Shown here: positions 1,925-48,786 of the stretch, in pieces
How positions within the stretch are numbered: the first letter of the stretch is position 1
Layout of the letters: each line of letters starts with the position of its first letter
From: Eutreptiella sp. 'Long Island Sound 2002'
Taxonomy: Eukaryota > Protista > Euglenida
NCBI GenBank assembly: GCA_964036045.1
Contig: OZ038379.1
Location: 50,282,001 to 50,346,000 of the forward strand
Direction: 5' to 3'
Length of the DNA: 64,000 nt
Notes under the pieces: model-generated
Database searches by the model: none
The model's input: the letters and a program-made list of their open reading frames with translations, nothing else
Told to the model about the DNA's origin: nothing
Program-made: the position numbers and the translations under genes

Positions 1925-2000
1925 CACTTCCCGAATCTAGAGTTTGAGCCCCCAACTCACTGATGGCAGCCTGGGGTGTGGGCGCCAAATTGGAAGGTGC
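1925..2000. repeat. Dispersed ~75-bp repeat (second copy at about 4853-4925)
   Basis: GTTTGAGCCCCCAACTCAC..GGCAGCC..GGGTGTGGG..GCCAA occurs at both positions. Confidence 0.65.
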
Positions 2001-2894: not shown

Positions 2895-3490
2895 TTTCAG
2901 AAATGTATGGGTCAGGGGGGGGGGGGATGACCATATTTTTGGGTACCAAGGCCGGACTTTTCGGCATTTCAGGGTTTTTGGGCCTCAGGTTGCTCTGCGC
3001 ACGCATGCGGGACACCAACTCATAGGTGTTCCCCTGGGTGCCCCGACATATGTGGAGTTGCAGGAAGGTGAAAGGAGATAAGTGGATGCATTTTGACGTG
3101 CTGAATCCAAATATTGTGGTCTCATGTCCCAACTTGACAGCATGTTTGAGAAATTCTGCCATCTTTGATTTGTTGCACTCTGGTGAGCTTGGTGCTGCAA
3201 GTTGAACGAGGCAAGACCCGGGTGTCCAAGGTAGTTATCGGTCAAAGTCTCCAACATATTGGGGTGTTGAGGGGACCCATGTTGCACATGCCTTCTACAC
3301 ATCAAATGCAACAAATCCCACCAAATGACTTGACCCTGATATGCCCATACATTGGAGTAATGGGGGTAGGGGTGCGGTGCAGTCTGTCTGAAACCGGACC
3401 AGGACAGGGGAAAAAAACCCAACCTGTCAACGGCAATGGCCAATTTTCGAAAAAATATGGTCCCCCCCCCCCACCCATACATCTCCGAGA
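2895..3490. mobile_element. MITE-like segment with ~45-bp imperfect terminal inverted repeats
   Basis: GAAATGTATGGGTCA(G)nATGACCATATTTTT at about 2900-2940 is the inverse of AAAAAATATGGT(C)nACCCATACATCTC at about 3450-3487. No TSD was identified. Confidence 0.4.
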
Positions 3491-3949
3491 AGCCCCTCTA
3501 AAGGGCTTTCCGAATATACCCCACATACCCCCCCCTTCGGGACACGCAGCGGGCACAAATGAGGCAACAATGACGGCGACCCCTGAAAACGCTCCGTGTT
3601 GGCAGGTTCCTCAACGTCCCAGAGAGATATGCTGCAACCAGGCTTAGTTGCTCATGACGAAGAGCCCTTTGAGCAAGACCTACTCAAGGTGTGGGTGAAA
3701 TTGCGTGCACCTTTGACGGGTCATCTGAAAGGCAAGACATACATGAGCTGCAGGGAAAATTACAGGCATTTGATGGGCAGCTCACAAAAACCTACTTTCA
3801 AAGGTTGGGCAAAATTTCCATGAGAAATAACGTGATCATTTACTAACTAGCAGATGGCACACGTGGAACCTCCCCCCTGTGGCCGTCAAAAATGCCTGGC
3901 AATAATTATGCGCAGGACCAGCGCTACGGTGACATGTGGGGTACTGCAA

Positions 3950-4550
3950 AGCTATCAGGGCCCCTTTCTTGAGGGCCAAGACAAAGCAGCGCCAAAAAAG
4001 ATGTCAAGGCCACTTTCTTCAGGGCCTAAGTGAGGTGAAAAACCATAAAGTTGTCAAGGCCACTGTCCTGGGGGTCTAGATGAGGCGCCACAAAAAATGC
4101 TGTAAAGTCCACTTTCTTGAGGGCCTAGACAAAATACAACTAAATCCATCCTCCACTCTGAAGGCGGCTTTCTGAGGGCCCGCAAATGTGTCCAAACCAC
4201 CTTGAGGGCCTTGACGAAGTACGGCAAAATTATCAAGGCCACTTTCTTGGGTGCTTGTATGAAATACCGGTGAATTCATCCTCCAACGTCAAGGCAACTT
4301 TCTTGAGGGCCAGATGAGGTGATGCTGGTACCACCAAATTGTCAAGGCCATTTTGCTGATGGCTTAAATGAGGTGTTGCAAATTGTCAAGGTCACTTTGT
4401 TGAGGGCCAAGATGAAGTTCTGCAAAGTTGTCAAGGCCACTTTCCTCAAAGCATAGACAAAATACCACAAAGAAAACCGTCAAGGCCAATTTCCTGAGGG
4501 CCCGGACAAAGTACCTCAAAATTGTCAAGGCCACTTTCCTTAGGGCCTCG
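3950..4550. repeat. Imperfect tandem array, ~45-55-bp period, core GTCAAGGCCACTTTCTTGAGGGCC
   Basis: About 13-14 copies of the core separated by variable linkers. The core contains the inverted pair TCAAG...CTTGA. Confidence 0.8.
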
Positions 4551-7789: not shown

Positions 7790-9299
7790 CGACGCCCTCC
7801 GCTGGCCGTCGACCAGCTCACGGTCGACCCGCTCACGTGCTGTGTCCTTCGTTTCTTTGCGCCACGCAGGCGCTCTGACACTCGTACGTGTGCGCCACAC
7901 AGGCACTCTGTCACCCGTTTCTGTGCACCATGCATGCGCGCTGTCATTCGATTCTGTGCACCATGCTGGTACTCTGCGACTCGTACCTTTGCGCCACGCA
8001 GGCGCTGTGTCACTCATTTTTGTGCGCCATGTAGGACCTCTGAGATTTGTGCCTGTGAGCGATACAGGGGCTGTGTCATTCGTTTCTGTGCGCCAGGCTG
8101 GCGCTCTTAGACTCGCCGCTGTGTGCCGCGCTGGTGCTCTGTCTTTCGTTTCCGTGTGCCATGCAGGCGCTCTAAGACTCGTACCTATGCGCCACGCACG
8201 CGCTCTGCCATTCGTTTCCGTGCGCCATGCAGGCACTCTGAGAGTCACCTCTGCGCCCCACGCAGGAGCTCGGTCTTTCGTTTCCATGCGCCATGCAAGC
8301 GCCCTCAGACTCCCCTCCTTGCGCCATGCAGGCGCTTTGTCATTCGTACATGTGCGCCACACAGGCGCTCTGTCATTCGTTCCTGTGCGGCACTCGTTCC
8401 TGTGCGGCACACTCGCGCTCTGGGACCTGCACTTGCGCACCACACAAGCGCTCTGTCGGTCGTTTTTGTGCGCCATGCAGGCGCTCCGTCCTTTGTTTCT
8501 GTGCGCCACGCAGGCACTCTGACACTTGTACTTGTGTGCCATGCGGGCACTCTGTCCTTCGTTTCTGTGCGCCATGTCGGGGCGATGTTATCCGATTCTG
8601 TGCACCATGCTGGCACTCTGCGACTCGTACCTTTGCGCAGGTGCTGTGTCATTCGTCTTTGTGCGCCATGTAGGACCTCTGAGACTTGTACGTGAGCACC
8701 ATGCAGGCGCTCCGTCATTCGTTTGTGTGCGCCACGCTGACGCTCTTAGACTCGCCTCTGTGCGCCACGCTGGCGCTCTATCTTTCGTTTCCATGTGCCA
8801 TGCAGGCGCTCTAAGACTCGTACCTATGTGCCACGCACGCGCTCTGCCATTCGTTTCCGTGTGCCATGCAGGCACTCTGAGACTCAGCTCTGCGCCCCAC
8901 GCAGGCGCTCGGTCCGTCGTTTCCATGTGTCATGCAGGCGCTCTGAGACTCGCCTCCTTGCGTCAGGCAGGCACCCTTTCATTCGTACCGGTGCGCCACG
9001 CAAGCGCTCTGTAATTCATTCCTGTGCGGCACACTAGTGCTCTAGGACCCGCACTTGTGCACCACACAAGCGCTCTGTACTTTGTTTTTGTGCGCCATGT
9101 AGGCACCCTGAGACTCACTCCTGTGCGCCACGCATGCGCTATGACACTCGTACATATGCGCCATGCGGGCACTCTATCCTTCGTTTTTGTGCGCCACGTA
9201 GGGCCGCTTTCATTCGATTCTGTGCACCATGCTGGCACGTTGCGACTCGTACCTTTGCGCCACGCACGCAATGTGTCATTCATTTATGTGCGCCGAGTA
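7790..9299 (+). repeat. 33-bp satellite, segment 1
   Basis: Monomer TGTGCGCCAYGCAGGCGCTCTG plus 11 nt (TCATTCGTTTC or AGACTCGTACC type). It gives an 11-aa periodicity (VRHAGALSFVS) in the ORF track. Confidence 0.95.
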
Positions 9300-9978
9300 C
9301 TTAGGCGGCTCTATACGCACGTCCCAAAATTGCCACAGTTCCCAAATGGGTACCACCCCAAAACGGGGGCTGAAAAACCACTTTGGAAAATTGCACAATT
9401 GTGCCTTGCAGGGAACACCCCGAAAAACCTGTGAATTATCCAAAATGACTGTGTGTAGGGGGTACTACATGTGCCGGTTAAAAGTCATGTATTCCTTTCA
9501 AATTTGGGCACTGCAGTGTCCATGCGGAGAAAAATCCAATTGTTCCATGTCATCCGCTGGTGCATTTCAAACCACACTGCAAAATGCAACTTAAAACATG
9601 AAGCAAGGAGGATGACAGGCAAGCACATGCAAAACTGTGGTTTGTTTTTTGTTACAGCTGCTGCTGACCCAGTCACTGTGATTGTATGCGAAGCGTGAGA
9701 AACAATGCAGCACCAGTGCAACCAACAAGCAATGGAGGCGGCGCCAGTGCAGCCAATGCAATAATAAATGAGGGCAACAATGCCTGCAAAAGAAATGGCG
9801 CAGCACGGGTAAAAAAATGGCGAGTCGATGAATTTGGGCACTGCAGCGCCAAAAATACCAAAACATGAAAAAGGGCACCAGTCTCACACCTGCGTAGAAC
9901 AGGACGCGCAACAGTGTGCAAATCGAGTTGAAAAAAATACTGACATAGACACAGGCAGTGATAACCGCGCAACGCAGT

Positions 9979-12651
9979 CTACTTCTTCTTCGGGGGAGCC
10001 TTCTTGCACTTGGCCTGACCCACTTTGGCGTGAAACGTATTGAGGGGGGTACTGTCCTTGGCCTTTTTGGCTGGCTTTTTGGGGGGACCATCATCCTCAT
10101 CCCCACTGTCGTCGGAGCACGGCTTCTTCTTGCTGGGTGTGCTCCTCTTCTTGCTGTCACCACCTCCGACCAGCAAGATCTCCTCCTCCTCCTCTTCCTC
10201 CACATCGTCCCCCCCCTCCTCATTCTCCCCGTCCCCCGGCCTCTGCACCACAACTGCCATACAATCCCTAATCCTTGGCATCCAAGGGTCCCAGTTAACC
10301 AAGTAGACACAATCCATCTCCTGAACATACGCCGCTAGCTATTCACAGAACTCGTTAAACAAACCCTGCCGCCCAGTGATACAAGCTGCCAGACAGGGGG
10401 ACTCAGGAAGGCAGGACAGAAGCTGTGCTGGCAATACAGCCGACGCTGTCAGAAGCAAGAGCCACACTTCATCCTCGGACTGCCTGTCCCGTCAGGGAAC
10501 AATGCCAAGCACACGCAGGAGCCAACCAGCCGCTGCCAGACCAATGGTGCTGCCGTATGCACCCTGATCGCAAATGAAAATATTCGGGACCTTCACCCTA
10601 AACTTGTCTGGGACACAGAAGCAAATAGTCCTCTCCTCGAACCGATAGGTCGGGTGACCGACTGCCTGATCCAAAAAAGAGGTCATAATATACTGCCACC
10701 CTCCACACTCCTCAGAGTCGCGCAACTGATTAACCAGAAACTTAACGTCGGCCGCCATTCCACCAATAGCCACAGGTACCAGCTTGCCAACAACCTTCAG
10801 CACCAGGGAATGGATATCGTCCATTTGTTCCTTCATACACTCAATGAAGACCTGTTGTCAAAAGCACATTTCATTAGAGACGGGCACTGCTGTGCCTAAA
10901 GTGACCAACAATGCAAAATTGATCCCATTTTTATGCCTAACGGTTGCATACCAGTTTGTACTCCCTCAATGCAATCGTATACGGAATAGCCTTGCCAGGA
11001 ACCAACGCAATTGCCTGTGCCCGTGCTCCAGTTGCTTCATTCCCATCCTGCGGCTTGTTGAGCCAAATAGTTGTTGATTTCTCCCCATCAGTCGCTGTCA
11101 CTGCACTTTCCTTGACAGGCCTCGCCAGTGCAATCCTGAGGTCAGCCCATTCCTCATCCTGCCACAGCGGTGCTTTCTGGATGGTGTCCCAGCTTGGTAA
11201 GGGATTTTCCGCACTCCAGGTCCATTTCCCCAGTGACAATTTGGCTGCCCTCGGCGACTTTGTAAGCAGTTTGCGGACTCTTTGCATTTCATGCACGTTC
11301 ACTGTTAGAACAGGAGACCACTGGTACCACTGGGATCGAAACAGCCTTACGTTATGTGTCGGGGGGGGGGGGTCAACAGCGATCGCGCCAGACCCTGCCG
11401 CCCCATAAACATACGTCGAGAAGGATGGATGAGCGTGTTGTCCGGGTGAAGGTAAAGCATCTCCCACAAGCGGTCCCGCTTCAACAGTCTGGCCTTGGCA
11501 TGTAGTCCTGCGATCTTGGCCCCATCTCCAGCCATGTACAGCAGTATTTCATCCATTTGGTCGCCATGCAGTCCCGTCAACGGCCGCAAAGTGTAGGGGT
11601 TGAGCACTGCAGTGCAAAAATTAGGGTCGCATCGAATTTGGGCACTAAAGTTCCCATGAACACCAAAAGACGACGAAAATAGCTACTCAGAGGGCACAGT
11701 AGCTTCGTCGGCAGTGTTCTCGAAGCTGTCAATAAACTCAGCCATGCGGCCACCACATATCTGCAGCAACGAAACCAGCGGTCTCCAATGCTTCCGGATT
11801 GAGTCTTGGCAGGCATACAGTGTTGGACAGGCCACAGGTACGCAAAGGACTGACAACGGTGGTCTCATCGTGCATCTCTCATACCATGGATGTTTTCTCA
11901 CCCAGCCGGCCACACTTCCGCAGAGCCACCGGTAACATCTCTTTCGCTTTGCCCTTCTGCACTTCGGTCCAAATTCGTGCGGCCACTTGTCCCATACTTA
12001 GCTTGGTCACTGAGTGTTGTACCGCGTTGTGATCGCCTCCAATAATCTGTGTGATGTCAACAGGACACTCGTGTTTGATCTCCTCGCAGTAGACGTGTTG
12101 TAACTAGTCCGGCAGCGCCCGTGAGTTCCCACACTATTCTCGGTGAAGTCTTTGGAGTGACGTCAGGATATGAGCCCCGCCAAAGCAGTAGGGAATTTCA
12201 GCTGAGACAACAATGCAGCACAGGGAGGTAAGATTAATCGAGATATCACCGAGATGGGCACTGCAGTGCCCAAACGACAAGAATGTGTGAAAATGCCAAT
12301 GTGTGTGAAAGAGGATGGTAGTGTACCTTCGCTTCGCCATATGAGAATGTTTGAGATAGGTCGGCATGGTGCATTTGTACTCAGGCTTGCCATCCGCGAT
12401 AGTACTGAGTCCTCGTCCCTCTCTCTGGTCCGCCCACGCGTGAGGTCAGTGTCAAATTTTATCTTGGTCACCTGTATCTTGACCAGTTGTTTCTTGATCC
12501 ACGTTGTCCGGAATGTTTCCGTTGCCCGGTCTGCCACCGTCCACTTCACTCGAGCCTGCCCCAACTGCGCCCGTGTCTTCTCTGCTGTGTGAACGGCTTG
12601 CGATGCGGTCTGCTGCTCATCCCCTTCCGGCAGTTCGGTATCCGAAGGCAT
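9979..12651 (-). pseudogene. Second gene of element A (interrupted), C-terminal region MTase-fold-like, then an acidic/Lys-rich tail
   Basis: Chain of same-strand ORF pieces (12163-12651, 11683-11913, 11347-11607, 10937-11467, 10492-10836, 9979-10317). It is collinear and homologous with the second gene of element B (DRLWE; HSLVLKVVGKLVPVAIGGMAADV vs HNLVAQLVLSNVPVFICGETADV). Confidence 0.6.
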
Positions 12652-12973
12652 AGCTTAGCAAAGGGGCTAACAAAGGGTCACACGGCACACTACAAAAGGC
12701 CACAGGGCTGCAAATTGTTGATTTACACGCTTCTAATGTTGATGACTACTGGCAGCGCTCGACGATTGAACACAGATGGCAGATTTAGCATCACAGTCGG
12801 ATGCACCTCGTAAAAATTGAGGGTCACACTCATTCAGCTCAGAAAGGACAGCCACGGGGGCATCCGAATCATCACTGTGAACAGATACTACTTCTGGAGG
12901 GGGGGGGTCCGGGTCCCATCCATCATCACCCACAAAAACAGCAGCCCTCAAGTCTGGATCTCCGGCTGCCCCA

Positions 12974-15103
12974 CTAGGGGGGGGGGGTCCTCAACACTGT
13001 CACTGTCGCCATCAGCATTGGGGGGGGGGGGGCGGGTATCCGGGCGGGGTCCCTTCGCGCAAAAGCGCGTGCTGGCTGGCGTCGCTTGTACCGGTCTTGT
13101 GTATTACATGCGCGTAACATGTCCTGTGCCTGTGCTAATGTTGTGTCCATATCACTTGGAGGACGCTGTGGCACGTGTCTACCCAGCTCTGTCATCACCT
13201 CAGCATCAACTTTAACAGGCTTCACAAGTGTTTGCAATGTCTTGGCACGTAGATCTCGGTAATGCTCTGCAGTGAGCACCGTATCTAGTGAACAAGGAAA
13301 ATCCATCTTGGCAGGAGCCCACCTGTCTTGCACGATACTCGACTTCTGACTGGACCAGACCAGGGGGGGTATAACACCAACATCAAAACACTGCATCAAT
13401 CTGGTGAAGCGACGATCAACCAGTTGTGGCAGTCCCTTTGGAACATTAACGTACTGCAGGTCCTTTGGGGTCTGGCCAGCAACGGGAGTGAGTATAAATA
13501 GGTCATGCACCTGTTGCAACGTACAGTTCCCAGGGTGTTGTGCCATTAAGTGCACAACGCGGCTCAACAGGGCCTCACACGGTTCCTCACTGTGTGCCGC
13601 CCCACGTAAGCGGGCAAACCACTGGGACCACAACAACCTAGCAACAACAATGGTGCGCACATATTCGACCTTGTCCTCATAACCTAAGGTGAGCCTCACA
13701 AGGACGTGTAGACAACGGCTCAACAATGGCCCTGCAGCGTGCTGCTCTCCCTGTGCAGACCAATGACAATCCCTCACTTGCGACCCAATAATAAACAAGG
13801 CTGGAATGTAACCATACAGCAGTGTTACCAACCCTTGCACCTGTGTAAGAAGTGTGCTGTGATTAGCGTTACCCGGTCGGTGCAAACCCCTTAGAGTCTG
13901 TAACTTCTGTTCCAAAGGTTGGCGCCACTTATGGGCCAAGTGCAAGAGCACCAAAATCATACGCTCCACATAGATGAGTGTCGGAAAGTTGGGAACTGCA
14001 GTGCCCAAATTGAGTGAACCATACGAGAAATAGGTAAATAAAGGGAAGAATCTTCCGTAGCACAGGGTTACACAATATTCATATGGGTGCCATGTGCCAT
14101 ACACTACTGGGGTACGTGTAATGTACAGGGGCGAGTTGTACCGAGCATAGCTGATGCTATAAACAAGCTTAAGGACGCGGTAGTGTATGTTTTCGTCGAC
14201 CAACAGTGGAAGACGGTGTTGTGTGTGCTGCCGCACCTCCTGGAGACCGTGAATAATAGAGACAAGGTCAGGAGTGGCGGACACAGTTAGGTCTATGAGA
14301 AAAAAGGGGGTCCAAGCTGGGCTGGTAACATTAGCCCGTCGTATGTCCAAGGGACAACGAACATGTTGAAGGCGGATGGGGTCGTCCATCAACCCTTGCA
14401 AGCCATCAATGAAGTTTTTGTGGCTCTGCACCAACAAGTCTGCAGTGTACCCAATCCTCTGCCGCAAAACCGAGAGACTAGGAAAAGACGGCATAACGTC
14501 AACAGGTCGTTTCAAGAGTATGATAGCACCGGCTGTACAATTGAGGGACCGGTTCTCATTACCAGGCACAGGCCGGAAGTTACACCTATAAAAATTATCG
14601 AACCATAGGACAGCGGGTTTACCTTCCAAGGTCTGCCAAAGACTGGGGCACGCAGTTGCTCCTTGGACAGCAAAGGAGGGTACATGGTAAGAACATTGAC
14701 CCATGTGAGCCAAACACCTACGTTGCACACGACTCTTGGGTTGGACACCTATAGCCCTCTTGGCACGTGGACGACACCTCTTGTGTAGAAGAGACCATAT
14801 ATTAAAAACCTCATGCTCAGCAACACGAAACCATTGGTCCGGCAGACAATTAAGGGTACGCATGTCCCTTTGTTGGATGTATTCGCCAACGGACCGCCTA
14901 CTTCTCCACTCGAACCGGAGATCTAACACCCACGTACAAAACTCATCGGCATCCTTATCCCTACCCACAGCCTCAAATAGATCCTTTTTTGAAGCATATA
15001 CCTTCGAACTAAGGAATTGCCGGAAGGGAGCCGCATCCATGGACAAAAGACCTGTTTGCACACAGCAAAGGTAAAGGGACAAAGAGAACAGAGGCACCAT
15101 CAC
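12974..15103 (-). CDS. Putative DDE (RNase H-fold) transposase of element A, 709 aa, DUF6589-like motif pattern
   Basis: Long intact ORF inside a TIR/TSD element. Motif order WFDN - LVDEN - GTWH - EYVR - EEPCE fits D, D, H-containing insertion domain, E. The family assignment is inference. Confidence 0.75.
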   Translation of the reverse strand: MMVPLFSLSLYLCCVQTGLLSMDAAPFRQFLSSKVYASKKDLFEAVGRDKDADEFCTWVLDLRFEWRSRRSVGEYIQQRDMRTLNCLPDQWFRVAEHEVFNIWSLLHKRCRPRAKRAIGVQPKSRVQRRCLAHMGQCSYHVPSFAVQGATACPSLWQTLEGKPAVLWFDNFYRCNFRPVPGNENRSLNCTAGAIILLKRPVDVMPSFPSLSVLRQRIGYTADLLVQSHKNFIDGLQGLMDDPIRLQHVRCPLDIRRANVTSPAWTPFFLIDLTVSATPDLVSIIHGLQEVRQHTQHRLPLLVDENIHYRVLKLVYSISYARYNSPLYITRTPVVYGTWHPYEYCVTLCYGRFFPLFTYFSYGSLNLGTAVPNFPTLIYVERMILVLLHLAHKWRQPLEQKLQTLRGLHRPGNANHSTLLTQVQGLVTLLYGYIPALFIIGSQVRDCHWSAQGEQHAAGPLLSRCLHVLVRLTLGYEDKVEYVRTIVVARLLWSQWFARLRGAAHSEEPCEALLSRVVHLMAQHPGNCTLQQVHDLFILTPVAGQTPKDLQYVNVPKGLPQLVDRRFTRLMQCFDVGVIPPLVWSSQKSSIVQDRWAPAKMDFPCSLDTVLTAEHYRDLRAKTLQTLVKPVKVDAEVMTELGRHVPQRPPSDMDTTLAQAQDMLRACNTQDRYKRRQPARAFARRDPARIPAPPPPMLMATVTVLRTPPP

Positions 15104-15809
15104 AAAACAAACCTGATGCGGCAGAGTTCAAAAGCAGCTAGCAAAGATCCAAACAATGTATCCCCCAAAGGACGTGCGACGTTCCAAAGCCTGGGTACAC
15201 TCCAAGGTGGCAGTCACACAACAGGCAATATATTTCCAATGAGCAGAGGATGAGTACCAACGTCCGATGAGTCATACGTCCTTCGTCAGGTGTTACACAA
15301 TGGGAACCAACAGGAGTGAAATGCGGAGTTTCAAATTTTTTGGCCACTGCAGTGCCCAAAAGTAGTGGAAGCCCATTTTCAAGTGCACATTTGGACAGGA
15401 ATGGAAGTGATTGGGCAAGGTACATTGTACGTGGCCTTCCGAGTATAACACTGCCGTGCGATGACCCATTGATGACCGGTATGCCAAGGTTTGATGCCTG
15501 CTGCTGCAGTAGGACATCACCTGAGGAGATGACTACAGAGCTGTATTGGAGAACCGACTGAAAAAAGCCATTTCAAATTTGCAATGCCTGAAAATTTTAA
15601 ATGACACAATTTTCAACCCGGAACAGGGGGTGTATATGTGCACCCGTGGAAGCGACAAAAGGCAAGGTTGTTGTATCCCACGATGAAAATACACGTGTAG
15701 TTGGCCGAAAAAATGATATGCTTTTTTTGGGTGCAAAAAATGGATGTTGAAATCGCCATGAATTGTGCCTTTTAGCGACGAAGGCTACGTGCGTAACGAG
15801 CCGCCTAAG

Positions 15810-18800
15810 GAGTAGGACCTCTAAGACTTGTACCTGTGCGCCATGCGGGCGCTCTGTCATTCATTTGTGTGCGCACGCTGGCGCTCTTAGACTCGCCTTT
15901 GCGCACCACGCTGGCGCTCTTAGACTCATACCCGTGCGCCACGCAGGCGCTCTGTCATTCATTTCCTTGCGCCAGGCAGGCACTCTGAGACTCACCTGTG
16001 CGGCCCACACGAGTGCTCTATCCCTTGTCTCCATGCGCCATGCAAGCGCTCCGAGACTCGCCTCCTTGCCACGCATGCACTCTGTCATTCGCATTTGTGC
16101 GCCACACAGGCGCTCTGTCATTCGTTCCTGTGCGGCACGCTCGCGCTCTGGGGCCCGCACCTGTGCGCCACACATGCGCTGTCTCGTTCGTTTATGTGTG
16201 CCATGCAGGCGCTCTGAGACTTGCTCCCGCGCTCCACACAAGCGATTTGTCATTCGTACCTATGTGCCACGTAGGCACTTTGCGATTTGTTTCTGTGCGG
16301 CACGCTCGCGCTTTGAGACCCTTACCTCTCTGCCACGGAGGCGCTCTCTCCTTCGTTTCTGTGCGCCAGTCGAGGCGCTCTGAGACTCGCTCCTGCGCCC
16401 CACGCACGCACTCTGTCATTCGTTTCTGTGCGCCACGCAGGCACTCTGTCCGTCGTTTTAGTGCGCCATGCAGGCACTCTGAGACTCATTCTTGTGCGCC
16501 GGGTAGGCTCTCTGACACTCGTACCTCTGGGCCATGTGGGCACTCTCTCCCTCATTTCCGTGCGCCATGCAGGGGCGCTATCATTCGACTCTCTGCACCA
16601 TGCTGGCACTCTGCGACTTGTACCTTTCCGCCATGAAGGCGATTTGTCATTCGTCTCAGTGCGCCATGTTGGCCCTCTCAGATTTGTACCTGTGCGCCAT
16701 GCAAGCGCTTTGACATTCGTTTCTGTGCGCCACGGTGGCGCTCTTAGACGCGCCTCTGTGTCCCACGCTGGCACTGTATCATTTGTTTCCGTATGATATG
16801 CTGGCGCTCTAAGACTCGTACCTGTGCGCCATGCAGGCGCTCTGTCATTCTTTTGCGTGCCCTATGCATGCACTCTGAGACTCACCTCTGTGCCCCACGC
16901 AGGCGTTAGGTCCTTCGTTTTCATGCGCCATGCAAGCGCTCTGAGACTCGCCTCCACGCGCCATGCAGGCGCTTTGCCATTTGTACCTGTGCGCCACGCA
17001 GGCGCTATGACACTCGTACATGTGCGCCATGCGGGCAGGCTATCCTTCGTTTTTGTGTGCCACGTCGGGCCGCTGTCATTCGAGTCTGCGCACCATGCTG
17101 GCACTTTGCGACTCGTACCTTTGCGCCACGCACGCAATGTGTCATTCATTTCCGTGCGCCGCGTAGGACCTCTGAGACTTGTACCTGTGCGCCATGCGGG
17201 CGCTCTGTCATTCATTTGTGTGCGTACGCTAGCGCTCTTAGACTCGCCTTTGTGCACCACACTGGCGCTCTTAGACTCATACCCGTGCGCCACGCAGGCG
17301 CTCTGTCATTCGCATTTGTGTGCCACACAGGCGCTCTGTCATTCGTTCTTGTGCGGCACGCTTGCGCTCTGGGGCCCGCACCAGTGCACCACACATGCGC
17401 TGTCTCGTTCGTTTATGTGCGCCATGCAGGCGCTCGGAGACTTGCTCCCGCGCCCCACACAGGCGCTTTGTCATTCGTACCCATGTGCCACGTAGGCACT
17501 TTGTCATTTGTTTCTGTGCGGCACGCTCGCGCTTTGAGACCCGCATCTGTGCGCCACGGAGGCGCTCTCTCCTTCGTTTCTGTGCGCCACTCGAGGCGCT
17601 CTGAGACTCGCTCTTGCGCGGCACGCAGGCACTGTGTCATTCGTTGTAGTGCGCCATGCAGGCACTCTAAGACTCATTCTTGTGCGCCGGGTAGGCGCTC
17701 CGACACGCGTACCTCTGGGCCATGTGGGCACTCTCTCCCTCATTTCTGTGCGCCATGCAGGGGCGCTATCATTCGATTGTCTGCACCATGCTGGCACTCT
17801 GCGACTTGTACGTTTGCGCCATTAAGGCGAATTGTCATTCGTCTCAATGCGCCATGTTGGCCCTCTCAGATTTGTACCCGTGCGCTATGCAAGCGCTTTG
17901 ACATTCGTTTCTGTGCACCACGGTGGCACTCTTAGACTCGCCTCTGTGTCCCACGCTGGCGCTGTATCATTTGCTTCTGTGTGATAAGCTGGCGCTCTGA
18001 GACTCGTACCTGTGCGCCATGCTAGCGCTCTGTCATTGGTTTCCGTGCCCTATGCATGCACTCGGAGACTCACCTGTGTGCCCCACGCAGGCGTTAGGTC
18101 CTTCGTTTTCATGCGCAATGCAAGCGCTCTGAGACTCGCCTCCACGCGCCATGCAGGCACTTTGACATTTGTACTTGTGTGCCACGCAGGCGCTATGACA
18201 CTCGTACATGTGCACCACGCGGGCACTCTATCCTTCGTTTTTGTGCGCCAGATAGGGCCGCTGTCATTCGATTCTGTGCACCATGCTGGCACTTTGCGAC
18301 TCGTACCTTTGCGCCACGCACGCAATCTGTCATTCATTTATGTGCGCCGAGCAGGACCTCTGAAGCTTGTACCTGAACGCCATGCGGGCGCTCTGTCATT
18401 CATTTGTGTGCGCACGCTAGCGCTCTTAGACTCGCCTTTGTGCACCACGCTGGCGCTCTTAGACTCATACCCGTGCGCCACGCAGGCGCTCTGTCATTCA
18501 TTTCCTAGCTCCATGCAGGCACTGTGAGACTCACCTCTGCGGCCCACACAAGCGCTGTATCCCTTGTCTCCATGCGCCATGCAAGCGCTCCGAGACTCGC
18601 CTCCTTGCCACGCATGCACTCTGTCATTCGCATTTGTGCGCCACACAGGCGCTCTGTCATTCGTTCCTGTGTGGCACGCTCGCGCTCTGGGGCCCGCACC
18701 TATGCGCCACACATGCGCTGTCTCGTTCGTTTATGTGTGCCATGCAGGCGCTCTGAGACTTGCTCCCGCGCCCCACACGGGCGCTTTGTCGTTCGCACCT

Positions 18801-40999: not shown

Positions 41000-41699
41000 C
41001 TTAGACGTCACAGCCCTTCGCCCCCACCTTGGCGCTATGTCCCACGGAAGTCCATGTTGTAGTGAGAAGAAAACTATCACAAAAGGCGTGTTCTTTTGGG
41101 GGTAGCCCCCCCCCGCAAGTGGCAATATGTAGAATGAAGGTACGTATGTCTAATGTATGTCAATATTTCCAATTCCGGTTACACAACAGATTTCCAGATG
41201 CAGGCCCCCAATCACAATAAAATGGGAAGCACTTCACATTCAGACCAGTGCATTCCCGTGGTTTCGGGGGGGGGGGGGGGGTTATTGTTGATGGTACCCC
41301 TTGTTTCCAACATTACCACAGAACCCACGAATATACCCTGGTCACAAGAACAGTAAAAATAGGGCTCATTCAACACCAAAGAATATATCCCCCAAAGTAT
41401 CCGACCGCATTTCCGAGCTTTCCGAAGCTGGGCGAAATTTCGGCCAACTCTTCAAAAAAAAATCCAAATCCACCGTTGTATGCAGCATAATGGCCGAAGT
41501 TGCGCAAAATTTCGGCCGGGCGTTGAGCACATGAAATAATGTCGCAGATAAAGGGCACCTACAACAACAAACATGTGCAAGGAACATAGGAGCAGTACAA
41601 TTGCAAGATATTGTGCAATGCAGTATAGTTAATGGATCCAAAAGATTGAGATATGAGTCAGCCTATGTAGGTCCTGCACGGTGCGCGTACAGGGGTCCA

Positions 41700-44290
41700 C
41701 ACACAAGCAGCACGTGGCAGAGCCACTGTGCCGCACCCCAAGCCTCACCCTTAGTGTACATGGCGCGAGAGAAGGACCCGCGCCAAGGGCTTAGGTGTCG
41801 TCGCTGCGGGCCCTTCCGCGCCCCTTGCCCGGGGCCTCAGATCCTCTCGGGGGCGGAGACTATCTCCCCTGCGCCTCATCCCCTGACGGCATGACCAAAG
41901 GCGATCGGGTGAAGCCCAGAAAAGGCCGTGTGCTGCGGCTGGGCGACGGCGTCCTGACGCTGGCGCCTTATTGGCGCTGCCAGCCCCCGCAAGCCCCCGG
42001 TCCCCTCTTGGGCTTGCTTGGGGTGGAGACCCTTGGTGACCCGGCTTGCACCAGTCGCTTGCCCGCGGCCGTGGGGCGGCGGTGTGCCGAGGGTTGGCTG
42101 AGGTCCCCTTGCCCCCCCCCCCCCCCTCCCTTGCGGGGTTGCCTACTAGCTGCCCTCCTATGCTTCCGCCCCCTCCCTAGGGTGGACGCTCCGGCTCTGG
42201 AGTCGATTGTGCTGCCGCTGTGGCCGCCCCTCCCACGGCCAATATCCAACCGGTGGCGGAGGCGGGGGGTTTGGGGGCGGAGAAAGTCAAGGGGGGGGGG
42301 TGCGGGAAGGCCGCTCCTCGGCTCCCGCTCGGGGAGCAGGGTGGCCCGTAAGGGGGGGGGGGGGCGAGATCCTTTGGCTGTGATCCCCTTGCTGCCTACG
42401 TGCCTGCCTTGTGGCACTTCTATTGGCACTAGGTCCCGTCCGCGGGGTCCCCCGGCGACGCGCGCTTCTGGCCCTTGCCCGGCCCCATCCGGTTGTTTGG
42501 TTCATGGGCCGCAAGTGAAGGTGGTGACGGCGCGTTCTGGTTCTCCGATTCACTCGGCCGCCGGAGCCAGCCATGCATGCCTCTGGCCGTGGAGACCCGC
42601 TCCGCCTGCGGTAGCCTCCGCATGCCTTGCCGCGTGACGTACGATCCCCGGCCCGTTGGTGCTCCTGTTGCCCTAGGTCGGCTGTGTGTCCGTATTGGCA
42701 GCATTTGGCAACCACATGGCCCGTAGCCCGGCAGCGCTCGCATGGCGGCGCCCCATGTGTGGGGCAGAGCCTTCCTGTGGAGCCACCTCCCTTGCCTAGG
42801 CTGCGCCGAGAGGAGAGGACCCCCGGCGCGGCTGCTCGCTGCGCCGCTCCCGAGCTGGCGGACTACTCCGCCGGCCGCGCCGGCGGGCAGCGCGGCCGCG
42901 GTTGCGCCCCCTGGTACGGCCGAAGGGGGGCCTTGCCTGCTAGTGCCGGAGGAAAGAATCCTCCCAAGAAACGAAGCATTGGTGCCGCGTCTATGGGCCT
43001 ATTCAGCCGCCACTGCCAATGCGTGACACAGTGCGCTGCCAAGCCCTCAAGCATCCTCACCATTTCGCCGCGGGCAACAAACTAGGGTCGCCCCTTCAAG
43101 CCAAGGGATGTACGACCCCCTAATGCAATTACGGCACCTGGGGGACTCCTCTGCAAGTAGGAGGCGGCCCATCAGTATGTGCGGCTAGAGCGCCTTGGCC
43201 GCCTGCCGTAGGACCACTGCTCGTTCCTGCAGTAAAAGCACGGCCATCCAGAGGGCGTGCTCCGGGCGCGCGGGTAGCGCCCCATCCGAAGTGGCCTCGA
43301 AATCCATTGGGAGCTCCGCGCACGACACCTCCCCCTCGCGCCAACGTAGCATGGAAGCCCATGAGACGAGGTATGCGGCCAGCTGCTAGTCCCACTTCTA
43401 TCCGCAGGGTAAGCTCGCTGCCAACCGCAGTTGTGGACCGCGGTCCGGACGTGACAGCGGACCGACTAGTTCCTGCCACGGGTACGTGCGCCCCCGTTTT
43501 GGCTGCGGCATATCCAGAAAGAGGAGCGCAACGTGGCCCATGTCGGACGTAGCTTGCTCTGCCCTCATGCGCGCCACCAGTACAGACAATGCCAACCCGA
43601 ACAACGGGTAGGCAAACTCGTCAACCTGCTGTGGGTCAACACCTTCCGTGGCCCAGGAGGGAACCAGACGGGCATGCTGCAGGCAAGCTGGCCAATTATC
43701 GACTATTGTGTTCAAAGCAGGCAGGTTACCGGTGGCCTCTCACAACCACTAGAGCCATGTGTGCCTTTCGGTCGTCCAGCACGCGCAGTGCGACAGGATG
43801 TGCCGCTCGTCATTGGTCACTTGGGCCGCACAGTACGGGCAGGTCAGGCGAGGGCTCATGCGCTGCTTGCCCGCCCGAGAAGCAGTCCATGTGGCCCGTC
43901 TGAGCACGCCCCGCAAGATGGAGAGCTCGGTCTCCCTGTGGAAGCGTGCGAAACCCGTCCGGCATGCCCGCTGGTCAATGGCCCCCGCCAGCCCCCCCAA
44001 CGTCTGCGGCCGCCGCGCCTCTAACCGCAGTAGGGCCGCTCATCGCAGTGACTGCCGTATGCGGTTTCGCAACAGGGCCCATTCCTCAGCCACTAGGTCC
44101 AATGGCTCGCCCTGCCCCGGTACGCGCCAACGCCACCATACCCCAATTGGGGCCGAATCCAAGCGCACTGGCTGTGCGGACCGAACGTCCTGCAGGCCCG
44201 TGCAACGAGGTGCATCCCTGCATTCCCAGATGGCATACATGAGGACCTGGGCAGCGCCGGGCACCCAGGCCAGTTGGGCCGTCATCCAAA
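41700..44290 (-). mobile_element. 5'-truncated non-LTR retrotransposon (LINE) 3' portion nested in B
   Basis: WALLRNRIRQSLR ... LSILRGVLRRATW ... LTCPYCAAQVTNDERHILSHC (post-RT CCHC finger). GC-rich and lacks the B palindrome. Boundaries approximate, no TSD found. Confidence 0.65.
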
Positions 44291-44900
44291 TGATTGAGAT
44301 ACAACAATTGAATACAAGGCAGCGCAATGGCTGTAGAAAAATTATCGAAACGTGTGTAGCAAAAGGTGCACAGGCACATGCTGGCCGAAATGTCGGCCAG
44401 CCTTTATACGAACAGACAATACAGACCATTGAGAGAGGTGTTAGCGCTTCCTCAGCCCCAAAGCACGAGGCTTCTTGGGTCCTGGCTTAGGGGCAGGCTT
44501 GGCAGCAGAATTGGCACTGCCAGTGGTAGTGGCAGCAGCTTGTGACTGTGTGTTGCCGCCCTGTGATGGTGAAAAATGATTGAAAAAAGTATTCAAACCC
44601 TTGCAAGTAGGGGCCACACTGCCAGTGGAGGATGCCGACGCGGGCTGCGCGCACTGTGTGTTGCTAGGAGACTCAAGAGCCTTGGAATTGTCACTTTTGG
44701 CTTCCTTGGTGTCTGTTCCTCCTTCTGTGAATCTGCCTGGTGGTCCTCCTCCTTATCATCACCCTCAACATACCGATTACCAAAACAATCAACATGACCC
44801 CTGAGCTCAAGTCATCGTACGCGTCATTCCATGCCTTGGGGGGTCAGGTGTCAGCCTTGCTAATGGACGCCCTTAAGGACTCAACAAAGTCCCCTGGTAT

Positions 44901-47061
44901 TTAACACTCTTCGGCCAGGAGGTCGCAAACAACACTACAGTCCCTGGAAAATGTGGTAGTTAGCATGCTTGCGAAATGCACAGACATGGTCCCAAGCAGA
45001 AACCAGTTGCCTGCCCGTGTGGGGACTGGTACAAGGCTCAAAAGGTATGAAAAAATCTCAATAGGCAGCACACAAGGCAAATGGCCCTGAGTAAAGGCTA
45101 CATAACGTGGCAGTTTTGTATCAAAAGCTGTAGCGGAGCAGATCGAAAAGAGATGGGAACTTGCATTATACAATGGGGTCCTAGTAGACAAATTAAAAAT
45201 AGAGATGTCACACCGGTGCAAATCCTCAGCAACCGTGGCTTGCAGACCAGCAACAGTGGCATTCACATCAGCAGTCTCACCACAAATGAAGACAGGCACA
45301 TTGGACAGCACAAGCTGGGCAACCAAGTTATGCAAACCAGAAGTATAGAGGTGTGGCACCTCAATGATGCAGGCGGCAAAGGGCAGTGAGCTAATGATAC
45401 TTGGAATAGGGGATCCACAACGCATTGCCATCACCTCTACACGACCTGCCTCAGCAGGTCGTAGTCCTCCTTAGTGTGTTTCAACCTGCGTGAACGTAGC
45501 ACACTGGATACTGACCAGACCCGTATCCGTCCTTTCACAAATAGGCTTAGCAACAGGGCGCTGCAACAATGCCCGCAGCCCCGCATATTTTGCCTCCTTC
45601 CATAGAGGTGCGTTAATTACTGCTGATCAAGGTAGCCAGGGCTTCTCTTTAGACGAGGTCTAGCAACCATAAGCTACCTTTAGGGGGGACGCAATTGCAC
45701 ATTGCTTTTGGCCATTTCGATAGTACCAAGTGTAGCTGCAGATAAGTAGGGGAACAGAGGGATGGATGTGCACGGTCCATTATTTGAAAGAAACGAAAAT
45801 TGGCCGAAATTTCGGCCAGGTACGTTGCATAATAAGAACACAGATTCCTGTTTGACGGTAACATACCTCTGCTAATGTCAACAAGCCCATTGGCAACCGT
45901 ATCAAGATGGAGTATGTGCCACGACCACATCTGGGCCTCTTCCACATCCTTTATAACTTTTTTGAGACCGGATAGGGTACTTTTTGTCCCATCCATGTAC
46001 CCTACGATCTCCCAAAGCCGATCAAGCATAATGCCTTCCACGTCCTTGAACGTGCCCAAGCTTGGGTACAACCCGCGTTTCTCCATGGCTGCCATGGCTT
46101 CAATTGCAGCGGCACCAACATATTTCACCAACCGTCCCACGCCGCTCCAACGTTTTGGCAACAACAATCTGCACATTAAAAAAGTAAGTGACACGAAAGC
46201 TGTCCATAATTTCGGCCAGGTTCATCAAAAACAAAGTACGAAACACACTAATGAGCCTTCCTCGGGTGTTATACCACACTCCTCAAGCATTACAGCAATG
46301 TGCGACAAAAGGGTCTTCTCCTCACCCTTCTCCTCATCTTGTATCCTGTCCAACAGTAGGGATATTCGCTCTAAGGTAGTGGAAGGTGAGGCAGCTGTAG
46401 TTTGGATTTGGTGAAATCCTGCAAGGCAGCGCCTGGCGTGTAATGGGCAGTCTTATTAAATTTCGTATCCACCAAAAACTAGGGTGCAATTCGGGCTCTC
46501 CATGGTTCTCTGCTCCAATTCCTGCTTGTGTTTCTGGGGAGCACTGAAAACATGCTGACCCCTGAGCGAGTAGCTACGGCTGAAAAAGGGGAAACCGAGC
46601 GATTGACAGATATCGGAAGGACCGTACTATCGAAAACAGTAGTTCCAAAAACATACAAGTCACTTTATAAAAAAGGACGTCCCGGATGTAATCCACAGGT
46701 CGCGTTGCATTGATGTCATCGTACCGGCGCTGCACCCGATCCTGAGGTAAATTTTCTGAACCTGGCCATAGCTCTGGTCGTGGTCAATAACGATTTGATC
46801 CCAACGAACTGATATTTTGCTTGTTGAGGTAACCTAGTCCAGTAATTTGACAGCACTTTTTTTCTTTGGGCTTGTCGTGGCTTTCTTTTGAACTCCCTGC
46901 GTGCTTGGATTGTCCCCTTGGAAATGATCTCCGCTTTGGGATGGTCTAATTTGTGACGCTGCGTCACCTGATGGAGGATTAACCACCTCTTGTGACTCCT
47001 TGGCAGGCTCAGACATTAAAAGTGAATGCGAAAGCACAGTGATCAAAGGAATATAGATCAA
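44901..47061 (-). pseudogene. Second gene of element B, C-terminal region resembling a beta-class amino-methyltransferase fold
   Basis: Pieces at 46834-47061, 45649-46194 (DRLWE) and 44901-45434. Homologous and collinear with the second gene of A. Confidence 0.55.
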
Positions 47062-47399
47062 CCAATAGGGCCAAAGCTACAATGACAACCACAATTTATG
47101 CGAAAAAGGGCTGAGAACTGGAGTTGGACCCAATCCTTCGAACAACCTGGCCGAAATTCCGGCTAGCTTTGTAGTGAACACAAAAGCCGTGTTCAAATTC
47201 GGTTTTTCAACAGGCTGGCCGAAATTTCGGCTAGAAAGGTATGTGTGTTGTAAATGGAGATGCACACATGACAAATTAAAGACTTTGGGCGAAATTTCGG
47301 CCAGCTCACTGCCGAAACGTGTCATGTACATGGTAAAACACAATGGCAATGCATGGCACACCCTTATTCATAGTCACAGGCACACATTATTTCCTTCAA

Positions 47400-48456
47400 A
47401 GGTAAAATCAGTCCCAGTGTGCTTTATCAACACCAATGTGCTCGCCCTCATCCAACGTGGCAATGCTATCTGCATCACAGTCAATCTCCTCCTCACTATC
47501 ACAGGAATCAATACCAATTGGGGCATCATGAGCATCAGCAACATACGTGCGCGCCCGGGGGGCACGGGGCTTGGGCGGGTGCTTTGGAGGCAGGGCACCT
47601 CCCCCCCCATTAGATGCAGGACGGTTGGCGGCAAGGATTCAAGCATATGCAGTGCGCAGTACCCCTTGTTGCAGAGGCGTGCGAGCAGAAGCATTGGCCT
47701 GTACAGCATCTTGAACACCCTTAGGGACCCTGGGACGTGAAATGAGGTTTTTCATTGCATGCAACAAAACCACTTTCACCCGGTGTGCAAAAAAGCAACA
47801 ACAGTACAATTTAAAGTTAAGTCAAGTGAGTGGGGATCGGCTCCTGACCTATGACGCCTCACGTTATCAAACCCTGTACAAACTTGGCGACGGTGCATGG
47901 TGTTCCACAGGGTATGTGCTACAAGTCTTGCACGCTGGTGAATGGACTCCTACCTAGTGTTGCACTGGCCAAGGACCCCTACGTTGCGCTATTGCCGACG
48001 CGACATGATACCCCAATTGTACCCAGACCCAAAATTAGAGTATAGGAGGGCCATACGACGTAGAAGGCAGTACAAGGCATGTAATTGGTGCAAAAATGTC
48101 TGGTACCAATGTGGAGGCTTCTTCTGGGCGGCTGTTGTCTTCACGTGAGCCATGTAATGCCACCTTTTGCGATTCTTCCGCAATGAGAGACAAAATTGCG
48201 AAAACTTTTGAAGATTTCCACCACATAGAGCATTTTGTGTAAGCCCTTTGGCTGCAGGTGCAAAGGCACCAACCACGGCAGCATGTTCAACATTTACGGT
48301 AATAGCACATGACATTAAGGCTGTATAGCACAAGAGTACGGCTTTGTAGGACAGTAAACTGCAATAGTCCTGACCCATAACAATTGCAAGGTGGCAGAAA
48401 CTTCGGCGAGATGTATTCAATGGCAAAACAAGTGGTACCATGTAGAAAAATGGCAA
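47400..48456 (-). pseudogene. Truncated transposase of element B
   Basis: Reading through stops gives LGQCNT...VCTGFDNVRRHRSGADPHSLDLTLNCTVVAFL, homologous to A's MGQCSY...VLWFDNFYR..NRSLNCTAGAII. The later D/H/E motifs were not found. Confidence 0.7.
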
Positions 48457-48786
48457 AATCTATGCGAAATTTCGGCTAATTGTAATAAAATGCCAAATAG
48501 GATGGTATGAAGTGTGCTTGGTAAAGAAACGTGTGCGAAATTTCGGCCAGCCCTAAAAAAAATTTGAAATAGGTAGACCTAAATGACATGAAGCTCAAAA
48601 GCTGGCCAAAGTTTCGGCCAGAAGTGTTCAAAATTGTATATACACATGCCTAACGGCTAACTCATCACCACCTATTTCAATCAGTGTCACACAACACGTG
48701 TAACAAAAAAGCACACATACATTAAATAGAATACTTAAATTGAACATGTGCAACGGTTGTCCTACGGGTAGGTTGTGACGCCTAAG

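Follow-up and report, generated by a model that had tools for sequence, protein, structure and literature searches.

A mobile element has to act on copies of itself while leaving relatives and host DNA alone, and, to our knowledge, this self-specificity and its change as lineages split are well understood in very few families of eukaryotes, one of them VANDAL/VANC. In En/Spm (TnpA) and PIF/Harbinger (a Myb-like partner), a second element protein binds repeated subterminal motifs and recruits or positions the transposase, and in ParB-parS systems dimeric ParB reads short palindromes, often present in several copies, with a specificity that co-evolves per replicon and with spreading and bridging. 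In Arabidopsis, VANC21, the element-encoded protein of the VANDAL21 anti-silencing system, binds its own family at introns, intergenic stretches and terminal non-coding regions (Hosaka et al. 2017, PMC5735166). The giant Plavaka (CACTA/EnSpm-type) transposons of red algae encode an accessory protein, PAG3, with a ParB-like N-terminal domain and carry adjacent inverted-repeat arrays, and PAG3 has been proposed to bind the inverted repeats on its own element (Petroll et al. 2025, bioRxiv 10.1101/2025.02.11.637652). Ectocarpus Sola1-1 encodes a ParB-like and DNA-methyltransferase accessory protein (PMC12477816), and ParB-HTH Dam fusions occur in chlorophytes (PMC4738411). The pairing of a ParB-like accessory protein with inverted repeats has been known from red-algal transposons since 2025, and we describe here what appears to be a similar pairing.

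Element A lies within the 64-kb window, the whole stretch of DNA that was analysed (Table 1). Judged from its sequence, element A is a cut-and-paste DNA transposon of the DDE type, with terminal inverted repeats (TIRs), a target-site duplication (TSD), an acidic triad, and multiple copies with different flanks. A sister copy, L001:7223-13743, is 92.8% identical to element A from end to end and is flanked by CATGT, unlike the duplication at element A, and the L003 locus holds an internal-deletion derivative of the A family that lacks most of both genes. The copy in the window is decayed and not fully intact: the transposase, called intact in the first-pass annotation, is frame-shifted at a G-run in its C-terminus, and gene 2 contains an in-frame stop near 12105 and a mutated intron-3 donor. 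The gene-2 model was built on the intact L001 copy, where it is open, encodes 719 aa and has GT-AG introns, and was then mapped to the window.

The transposase belongs to a large family (1705 clusters at E<=1e-3, counted as 50% identity clusters in public data), and an alignment of 32 diverse members revealed invariant columns at D148, D282 and E485/486/489. Pfam searches with the transposase, and then with 10 and 32 family members, returned nothing meaningful and recognised no DNA-binding domain, and a PDB profile search with the transposase alignment gave chance matches only. The element A transposase represents a DDE family that is unclassified, whose termini are CTTAGGCG and whose TSD is 5 bp long. 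The nearest clusters to the transposase in the Atlas are DUF6589 clusters, a lead only, which does not fix a superfamily name.

Table 1. Features of element A in the window, with sister element B and the palindromes of related lineages.
Feature	Position	Strand	Remarks
Element A, two-gene TIR DNA transposon	9300..15809	-	6510 bp; both genes on minus strand; insertion site is satellite
TSD of element A	9295-9299 and 15810-15814		GAGTA, 5 bp
TIRs of element A	9300-9322 and 15787-15809		23 nt, CTTAGGCGGCTC..
Half-site	9331..9341	.	CAGTTCCCAAA; ~32-42 bp inside terminus; also in L001:13695-13715
Subterminal palindrome copy	9503..9524	.	~205-225 bp from terminus at 9300
Palindrome copy	9833..9854	.	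~125 bp downstream of gene-2 stop codon
Gene 2 (partner gene)	9977..12651	-	six exons: 12651-12327, 12201-11885, 11805-11703, 11606-11415, 11301-10952, 10851-9977
Palindrome copy in gene-2 intron 5 (10951-10852)	10879..10900	.	4 mismatches to 20-mer
Palindrome copy across intron-3 acceptor	11599..11620	.	central CTGCAG gives the AG; one half coding
Palindrome copy in gene-2 intron 3	11637..11658	.	4 mismatches to 20-mer
Palindrome copy, centre of gene-2 intron 1 (12326-12202)	12253..12274	.	non-coding
Transposase ORF	12974..15040	-	ATG at 15040 matches that of P0001
Palindrome copy in transposase coding sequence	13988..14009	.	in frame, N-L-G-T-A-V-P-N
Palindrome copy	15339..15360	.	~300 bp upstream of transposase ATG; 1 mismatch to 22-mer
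Ninth subterminal site, decayed remnant	15572..15598	.	perfect 22-mer at L001:7440-7461
Sister element B	41428..48786	-	palindrome CTGGCCGAAATTTCGGCCAG at at least 10 sites; two arrays, ~70-bp spacing; right terminus ..GTGACGCCTAAG ends at 48786
L002 palindrome			GAATGAGCCATGGCTCATTC; 6 perfect copies
L004 palindrome			TTTGCGTAATTACGCAAA; ~42 copies
L005 palindrome			TTATGCGCA-CT/AG-TGCGCATAA; ~23 copies
L006 palindrome			GGTGTT-TTTC-AACACC; 3 copies
L007 palindrome			GACGGCGAGGCCTCGCCGTC; 5 copies
L009 palindrome			GTCCGCGAA-AG/CT-TTCGCGGAC

The first-pass annotation had described element A as studded with eight copies of a perfect 20-bp palindrome, none of them outside the element. A recognisable copy was found at all eight positions, yet each differs from the 20-mer TTGGGCACTGCAGTGCCCAA at one to four positions, and perfection belongs only to the consensus and to a single 22-mer in L001. 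Six of the copies match with one to three mismatches, against 0.02 expected by chance in the 64-kb window, and all six are inside element A; the remaining two, at 10880 and 11638, have four mismatches each. The full motif is about 22 bp long (TTTGGGCACTGCAGTGCCCAAA), and its flanks often add A/T symmetry. Confinement to the element was borne out, as we found no copy elsewhere in the 64-kb window, none outside A-family elements in 57 kb from three other loci of the same assembly, and none in host DNA across 121 kb. The L001 and L003 loci contain nine and six copies, respectively, all of them inside A-family elements. L001 shares the eight positions of the window copy and has a ninth, perfect site, and several of its other copies carry one mismatch. 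A, L001 and L003 carry their sites at the same positions, which are kept between copies that are 7% apart and in an internal-deletion derivative. Near the ends, the 9503..9524 site mirrors an L001 site approximately 218 bp from the opposite terminus, and the half-site noted near 9334 is also present.

The same annotation placed copies "even inside coding sequence", which holds for one complete site, in frame in the transposase as reported (LGTAVP), and for one half of the 11600 site, but is overstated for the others, which are intronic or otherwise non-coding; the 12254 copy, taken to be part of the coding sequence of the second gene, is at the centre of its first intron. In L001, coding DNA makes up 65% of the element and contains only one of nine site centres (P=0.0013). 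Three of the five gene-2 introns in element A carry the motif, and the other two are ordinary GT-AG introns without it. For intron 3, the frame stays open only with the two CAG acceptors at palindrome centres, and an 11431-type acceptor agrees with L005 homology. A single RNA contig, with an X16 loose end at 12325, is consistent with the splicing of intron 1, and the other metatranscriptome contigs span exons and introns alike.

Comparison with related elements revealed that at least nine lineages, namely A, B, a variant of B and six metagenomic relatives, bear private palindromes of 16-22 bp. When the motifs of seven lineages were matched against 13 loci, matches fell almost exclusively within the motif's own lineage, giving a near-diagonal matrix. 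In each arm a single base separates the palindrome of B from that of the B variant in L003, and the palindromes of the close relatives L004, L005 and L009 have a GCG-N6-CGC skeleton in common; closely related lineages thus have related palindromes, the sequence of which turns over as the two-fold symmetry stays. Palindromes with an asymmetric centre occur in both orientations, as would be expected of sites for a symmetric dimer on DNA. A related-locus search with a 10-member transposase alignment yielded three short loci only.

Placement of the sites is also shared across the family, which has subterminal arrays, introns with sites at conserved positions and, usually, one site in the transposase gene. 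Periodic arrays occupy non-coding stretches, either close to the termini or upstream of the transposase, with a 28-bp period in L004 and a spacing of approximately 70 bp in B and L002. Most L004 introns carry the motif, and only one of the 42 L004 sites is in the transposase coding sequence (P=2e-4). Six lineages keep one site within their intron-less transposase ORF, and in four of them this site falls within a single variable stretch of some 55 residues; the 13988..14009 copy of element A belongs to a variable region midway along the transposase, which in L004, L005 and L007 likewise holds the lineage's own palindrome.

The partner genes of L002, B and L005 are homologues of gene 2. An intron located just before a (D/S)GKYF..SGQHR segment has a conserved position in A, L002, L004 and L005, and in each of them it holds that lineage's own palindrome. 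The exon encoding GQHR in four L005-lineage proteins matched three PHROG 'ParB-like partition protein' families (E 1.8e-4 to 5e-2), and ParB_N or DUF6551 clusters account for 74 of its 100 named neighbours in the Atlas. These similarities suggest that in related lineages the N-terminal part of the gene-2 protein belongs to the ParB/sulfiredoxin-like class; this protein is the most likely candidate binder of the palindromes. The ParB-type motif is degenerate in A, which has GGAHI for GQHR, and reads AKQHL in L002; the homologous exons of A and L002 matched no profile, ParB included. Pfam and NCBIfam searches with all gene-2 exon pieces and a PDB profile search with the GQHR-exon alignment were blank or gave chance matches, tblastn of this exon against plasmids and PHROG searches with the C-terminal exons of gene 2 returned no hits, and an hhalign comparison of the exon alignment with P1 ParB gave a negative result. 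AF2 modelled the GQHR exon poorly (pLDDT 67), with no fold match, because the conserved intron splits the ParB-like domain, leaving only a half-domain to be modelled. The AF2 model shows helices, at low confidence, beyond the GQHR segment, and no helix-turn-helix was identified. For the C-terminal exon (pLDDT 61), Foldseek and VIA-align gave weak and conflicting matches: the best match by Foldseek was to beta-class N6A/N4C DNA methylases (E 7e-4, TM 0.28, on a low-confidence model) and by VIA-align to an Alba-like fold over the first 83 residues (Z 9.4, likewise weak). This model gave no oxygenase match, and neither a methylase sequence profile nor an evident DPPY-type motif was found in the C-terminal part.

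Taken together, the private palindromes and the conserved partner gene suggest that the palindromes are probably parS-like docking sites of a predicted element-encoded dimer, probably of the gene-2 protein. We consider it reasonably likely, on the distribution and symmetry of the sites, that they are cognate to a two-fold symmetric DNA-binding protein encoded by the element itself, most plausibly the gene-2 product, and function in the manner of parS or VANC motifs. Binding at the palindromes, the identity of gene 2 as binder and the effect of binding are what we infer from this pattern. Through its private sites the putative gene-2 protein would distinguish copies of its own lineage from any other DNA; those close to the two ends could bring the protein, and via the protein the transposase, to the termini, and sites across introns, untranslated regions and one tolerant transposase loop would let it cover the whole element, possibly for chromatin marking, anti-silencing or bridging. 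The first-pass annotation had proposed an element-specific site that the second-gene product or the transposase reads in a self-marking system like VANDAL/VANC. The core of this proposal is strongly backed by the lineage comparison, the fixed site positions, the avoidance of coding DNA, the subterminal arrays and a VANC21-like distribution, with anti-silencing or autoregulation as putative roles.

A more far-reaching reading, which we put forward only tentatively and hold to be doubtful, is that an unnamed, large superfamily of eukaryotic transposons has domesticated a ParB-parS module, in which a ParB-like clamp would load at many private parS-like palindromes approximately a kilobase apart and coat or bridge the whole element. 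If this were true, these sites would be kept at that spacing although they constrain introns and one transposase loop, and the clamp would provide each lineage with a private identity tag for transposase recruitment, for a silencing shield or for tethering excised DNA to chromatin. EBNA1 and E2 do the last of these for viral episomes, using arrays of palindromic sites. The resemblance to ParB-parS lies in short palindromes present in cis, in several copies and specific to the replicon. Unlike those systems, element A has two genes only, with no ParA-like ORF or Pfam match and hence no ParA partner, it is a nuclear transposon of a eukaryote, lineage A has lost the NTP-binding arginine motif (GGAHI), and no link to segregation was seen.

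The other systems introduced above resemble element A in part. Like the motifs of VANDAL21, to which VANC21 binds, the palindromes are family-specific, are concentrated in introns, intergenic DNA and terminal non-coding DNA, and diverge between related families. VANC motifs, however, are 9-bp, non-palindromic, of one orientation and in tandem, whereas the sites described here are palindromes of 16-22 bp and mostly single; VANC is unrelated to ParB, and VANDAL is a Mutator-like element, whereas neither gene of element A has a MULE or VANC-type Pfam match and its 5-bp TSD and short TIRs are unlike those of MULEs. In Plavaka the transposase is of the Plavaka/CACTA type, while that of element A has no Pfam match and its termini (CTTAGGCG, with a 5-bp TSD) are not CACTA-type; PAG3 ends in a 2OG oxygenase, for which the gene-2 C-terminal model gave no match; and the Plavaka repeats are tandem and beside the gene, whereas here single sites occur element-wide, in introns, at one position in the transposase coding sequence and at both ends. 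With Sola1-1 and ParB-HTH Dam the likeness would be a transposon accessory protein with a ParB-type part, for which binding and modification of its own element have been suggested, but a methyltransferase domain in gene 2 is suggested only by the weak Foldseek match to a low-confidence model. The motifs of En/Spm and PIF/Harbinger are subterminal only and not perfect palindromes, and sites in introns or coding sequence are not a feature of these elements.

The transposase family, with its 1705 clusters, presents a simple and readable code of one private palindrome per lineage together with a conserved partner gene. If the palindromes are cognate sites for a gene-2 dimer, the family would offer dozens of natural candidate protein-site pairs for studying the co-evolution of DNA-binding specificity, a test of a bacterial ParB-type module working on eukaryotic chromatin, and a case in which selection for DNA sites has influenced what introns, and even one coding sequence, contain.

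The binder could instead be the transposase itself, acting through its N-terminal region on subterminal and internal sites, with gene 2 in another role, which we regard as unlikely. Subterminal and internal transposase-binding sites are found in Ac, hAT and P elements, and several of our observations are consistent with such an arrangement: sites occur approximately 200 bp from both ends, with a half-site about 35 bp from one of them, arrays adjoin the termini in B and L004, the L003 derivative retains six sites in spite of having lost most of both genes, and the transposase, too, diverges between lineages. However, such sites are normally restricted to the ends, while here most are internal, in introns and coding sequence; moreover, searches with the transposase revealed no DNA-binding domain, and a ParB-like partner is a more natural reader of palindromes.

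Much less probable is that the palindromes act in RNA, as pre-mRNA hairpins that aid intron definition or removal or influence transcript fate, with the copies outside introns being secondary. The frequency of the motif in the introns of A and L004, its exactly central position in intron 1, the use of a CTGCAG centre as the intron-3 acceptor, and the introns with inverted-repeat halves in unrelated elements of the window would all fit such a role. Against it, copies within a lineage are identical and not merely complementary, degenerate copies lack compensatory changes, and arrays and single sites lie in terminal and upstream DNA and downstream of a stop codon, which led us to reject a purely RNA-level hairpin; in addition, the two motif-free introns of A are ordinary GT-AG introns, the stems would be only 9-11 bp, and Rfam found nothing in the whole window.

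Capture of a host-factor site, such as a promoter, enhancer or insulator element, might be read from the two copies upstream of the transposase start and the one downstream of gene 2, but we rejected this explanation as highly improbable because the A, B and L002 lineages share one genome and yet have unrelated palindromes, and because no copy was found in host DNA across 121 kb. Template switching can generate palindromes, and some copies do have extended, A/T-rich symmetric flanks, but an origin as tiny foldback micro-insertions or as functionless by-products of replication slippage has next to no likelihood, since TSDs flank none of the copies, the positions in A, L001 and L003 are fixed (thereby rejecting the micro-insertion with its own TSD that the first-pass annotation had raised), one copy is read in frame within a partly conserved stretch of protein, and the motif turns over lineage-wide with its symmetry retained and coding DNA avoided. 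Element A itself is present at very high copy depth in run X2.

In element A, a TIR transposon of 6510 bp (TIRs of 23 nt beginning CTTAGGCGGCTC; 5-bp TSD, GAGTA), the 20-mer TTGGGCACTGCAGTGCCCAA gave six window matches at ≤3 mismatches, against 0.02 expected; two further copies with 4 mismatches each were picked up by a 12-mer core search and a repeat finder. The real repeat unit is ~22 bp, TTTGGGCACTGCAGTGCCCAAA. The first-pass annotation had called the repeat a perfect palindrome restricted to the element. No copy of the motif in the window is perfect; the restriction stands, with no copies elsewhere in the window beyond 9300-15809. A second copy of A in the same assembly (L001:7223-13743; 92.8% identity over its full length), whose TSD is CATGT, unlike that of the window copy, contains all eight sites, confirming that their positions are conserved, as well as a ninth, perfect site 218 bp from its left end that corresponds to a decayed remnant in the window. 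The L001 sites differ from the 22-mer by 0, 1, 1, 2, 3, 4, 4, 1, and 3 mismatches and are nearer the consensus than those of the window copy. An internal-deletion derivative (L003:7678-11997; 96-97% identical) lacks element positions 2301-4498 and most of both genes and retains six palindromes. Word depths for the family reach tens of thousands in Logan contigs from one run, indicating that it is highly repeated. The insertion target of A is a satellite, with units of ~60-65 bp (..GTGCGCCACGCAGGCGCTCTG..) present on both sides (8800-9299 and 15815-16400).

Palindrome sites of element A and palindromes of related lineages (single positions are window coordinates)
Element	Location	Motif	Mismatches to 20-mer	Placement or copies
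A	9504		≤3	~205-225 bp from the 9300 terminus
A	9834		≤3	~125 bp past gene-2 stop codon
A	10880		4	gene-2 intron 5
A	11600		≤3	across gene-2 intron-3 acceptor, AG provided by its CTGCAG
A	11638		4	within gene-2 intron 3
A	12254		≤3	exact centre of gene-2 intron 1
A	13989		≤3	in frame within transposase (NLGTAVPN)
A	15340		≤3	upstream of transposase
A, remnant	~15572-15598			upstream of transposase; mirrors 9504 at opposite end
B	41428-48786	CTGGCCGAAATTTCGGCCAG		10 or more; two arrays, ~70-bp spacing
B variant	L003:2700-7400	..GGCGAAATTTCGCC..		B motif one base shorter per arm
L002		GAATGAGCCATGGCTCATTC		6 perfect copies
L004		TTTGCGTAATTACGCAAA		~42; 28-bp arrays upstream of transposase and near right end; most gene-2 introns
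L005		TTATGCGCA(CT/AG)TGCGCATAA		~23; both orientations
L006		GGTGTT-TTTC-AACACC		3
L007		GACGGCGAGGCCTCGCCGTC		5
L009		GTCCGCGAA(AG/CT)TTCGCGGAC		9

The transposase of A is a single minus-strand ORF (ATG at 15040) with 92% identity to the protein P0001. Its partner, gene 2, was modelled on the intact L001 copy and the model then transferred to the window; in L001 the gene comprises six exons separated by five GT-AG introns and encodes an uninterrupted 719 aa. The window copy has decayed, with a frameshift at a G-run in the transposase C-terminus and, in gene 2, an in-frame stop and a mutated intron-3 donor. G runs of 10-16 (C on the coding strand) occur at 11359-11375, 12894-12910, 12974-12990, and 13018-13034, and also at L001:11667-11682; one lies in intron 4 and several at the transposase C-terminus. 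Length differences between copies, some of which may be sequencing errors, shift the frame. Mapping the palindromes onto these genes bore out the earlier reading of the 13989 copy as in frame in the transposase, in a segment partially conserved in distant relatives. The 12254 copy does lie within gene 2, as had been proposed, but is intronic rather than coding; introns 2 and 4 of A hold no sites. Only one of the nine L001 site centres falls in coding DNA, which makes up 65% of the element (P=0.0013), and only one of 42 L004 sites in the transposase CDS (P=2e-4), both depletions. One metatranscriptome contig stops at 12325, its loose letters matching the exon-2 side of the spliced intron-1 junction, while other RNA contigs read through introns, and support for the splicing model thus comes chiefly from reading frame and homology. 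Opposite-strand contig joins were seen in two runs at 10799/10997 and 10912/11108, close to the 10880 palindrome, and could reflect either fold-back artefacts or rearranged, inverted copies.

No Pfam domain was found in the A-type transposase, whose family comprises 1705 clusters at E<=1e-3 (50%-identity representatives) with invariant D, D, and E/E/E columns; its closest Atlas neighbours, fungal DUF6589 clusters, are treated as a lead only. Every fetched relative lineage with enough non-coding DNA has its own palindrome, none being seen in four short contigs that are nearly ORF only. Scoring seven motifs against each of 13 loci placed nearly all matches on the diagonal of the matrix, and a GCG-N6-CGC skeleton is common to the close relatives L004, L005, and L009. 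Six lineages carry one site within the intron-less transposase ORF, and four of these six (A, L004, L005, and L007) place it in the same variable stretch of ~55 residues. The L005 transposase has an intron-like gap (L005:3384-3560) between ORFs 1789-3399 and 3564-4250, with three L005 palindromes. Element B, the sister element in the window, is broken at ~41700-44250 by what looks like a nested insertion, a GC-rich block with 66% GC over 42001-44000; the left terminus of B was not found.

Gene-2 homology extends across A, L002, B, and L005, and an intron directly ahead of the (D/S)GKYF..SGQHR..A segment occupies the same position in A, L002, L004, and L005, in each case holding the palindrome of its own lineage. 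A shared intron position with a different palindrome per lineage implies that these introns are old and that the sites within them have been replaced over time. In the gene-2 region of the metagenomic scaffold L004, an N run (scaffold gap) at L004:8021-8120 is flanked by a duplicated 60-bp stretch, and the exon structure is uncertain there. Four exon pieces of the L005 lineage match three PHROG 'ParB-like partition protein' families (E 1.8e-4 to 5e-2), and 74 of 100 named Atlas neighbours of the GQHR exon are ParB_N or DUF6551 clusters. No match came from searching gene-2 exons in Pfam, NCBIfam, and PDB profiles, from tblastn of the GQHR exon against plasmids, or from hhalign against P1 ParB, and AF2 modelled the half-domain poorly. 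GQHR is replaced by GGAHI in A and AKQHL in L002, with loss of the arginine typical of the nucleotide-binding motif. With the C-terminal domain model (pLDDT 61), Foldseek matched beta-class DNA methylases only weakly, and the first part of the model gave a marginal Alba-like match.

The palindromes would fit best as targets of an element-encoded, dimeric, sequence-specific DNA-binding protein, as the copies of any one lineage share the same sequence, two-fold symmetry persists from lineage to lineage despite turnover of the sequence, sites with asymmetric centres occur in both orientations, arrays adjoin the termini, and coding DNA is avoided; alternatives fit poorly. Given its ParB-like relatives and published precedents, we favour the gene-2 protein as the putative reader, with the transposase itself a serious alternative. 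Sites are spread more or less evenly, and even the long transposase ORF holds one, a pattern suggesting that it is important for the entire element to be covered; binding could then serve marking, spreading, or bridging beyond end recognition alone. A role as RNA hairpins keeps some weight, since the sites are intron-rich, with one at an exact intron centre and one providing a splice acceptor, and introns with inverted-repeat halves also occur in unrelated window elements, the halves GTTCATAA ... TTATGAAC occurring twice in one of them (29883-29910 and 31999-32043) against 0 expected; however, hairpins would leave both the terminal and upstream arrays and the sequence identity among copies unexplained. 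Insertion of a palindrome-bearing mini-element fits poorly with the absence of TSDs, the fixed positions, and the in-frame copy, and is further disfavoured by the replacement of sites within old introns. Host-factor sites fit poorly as well, as three lineages of one genome have unrelated motifs.

For a gene-2 protein that would read the palindromes of its own element, the closest published analogue is the red-algal Plavaka accessory protein PAG3, which has a ParB-like domain, whose gene is adjoined by inverted-repeat arrays, and which its authors propose binds its own transposon (bioRxiv 10.1101/2025.02.11.637652). Ectocarpus Sola1 encodes a ParB-like and methylase accessory protein (PMC12477816), and Arabidopsis VANC21 binds family-specific motifs in introns and in intergenic and terminal non-coding DNA (PMC5735166), the same distribution as that of the A palindromes. 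In contrast to the published cases, the elements described here belong to an unclassified transposase family. Their sites are true palindromes 16-22 bp long that occur singly and dispersed as well as in arrays; introns at conserved positions host some of them, a single site recurs within the transposase CDS, and across many lineages the pattern is clearly one palindrome per lineage. Elsewhere in the window, positions 16000-24000 show a strong negative AT skew (-0.29 to -0.34) and palindromic 8-mers every ~1300-1350 bp, suggesting a tandem repeat of that period.
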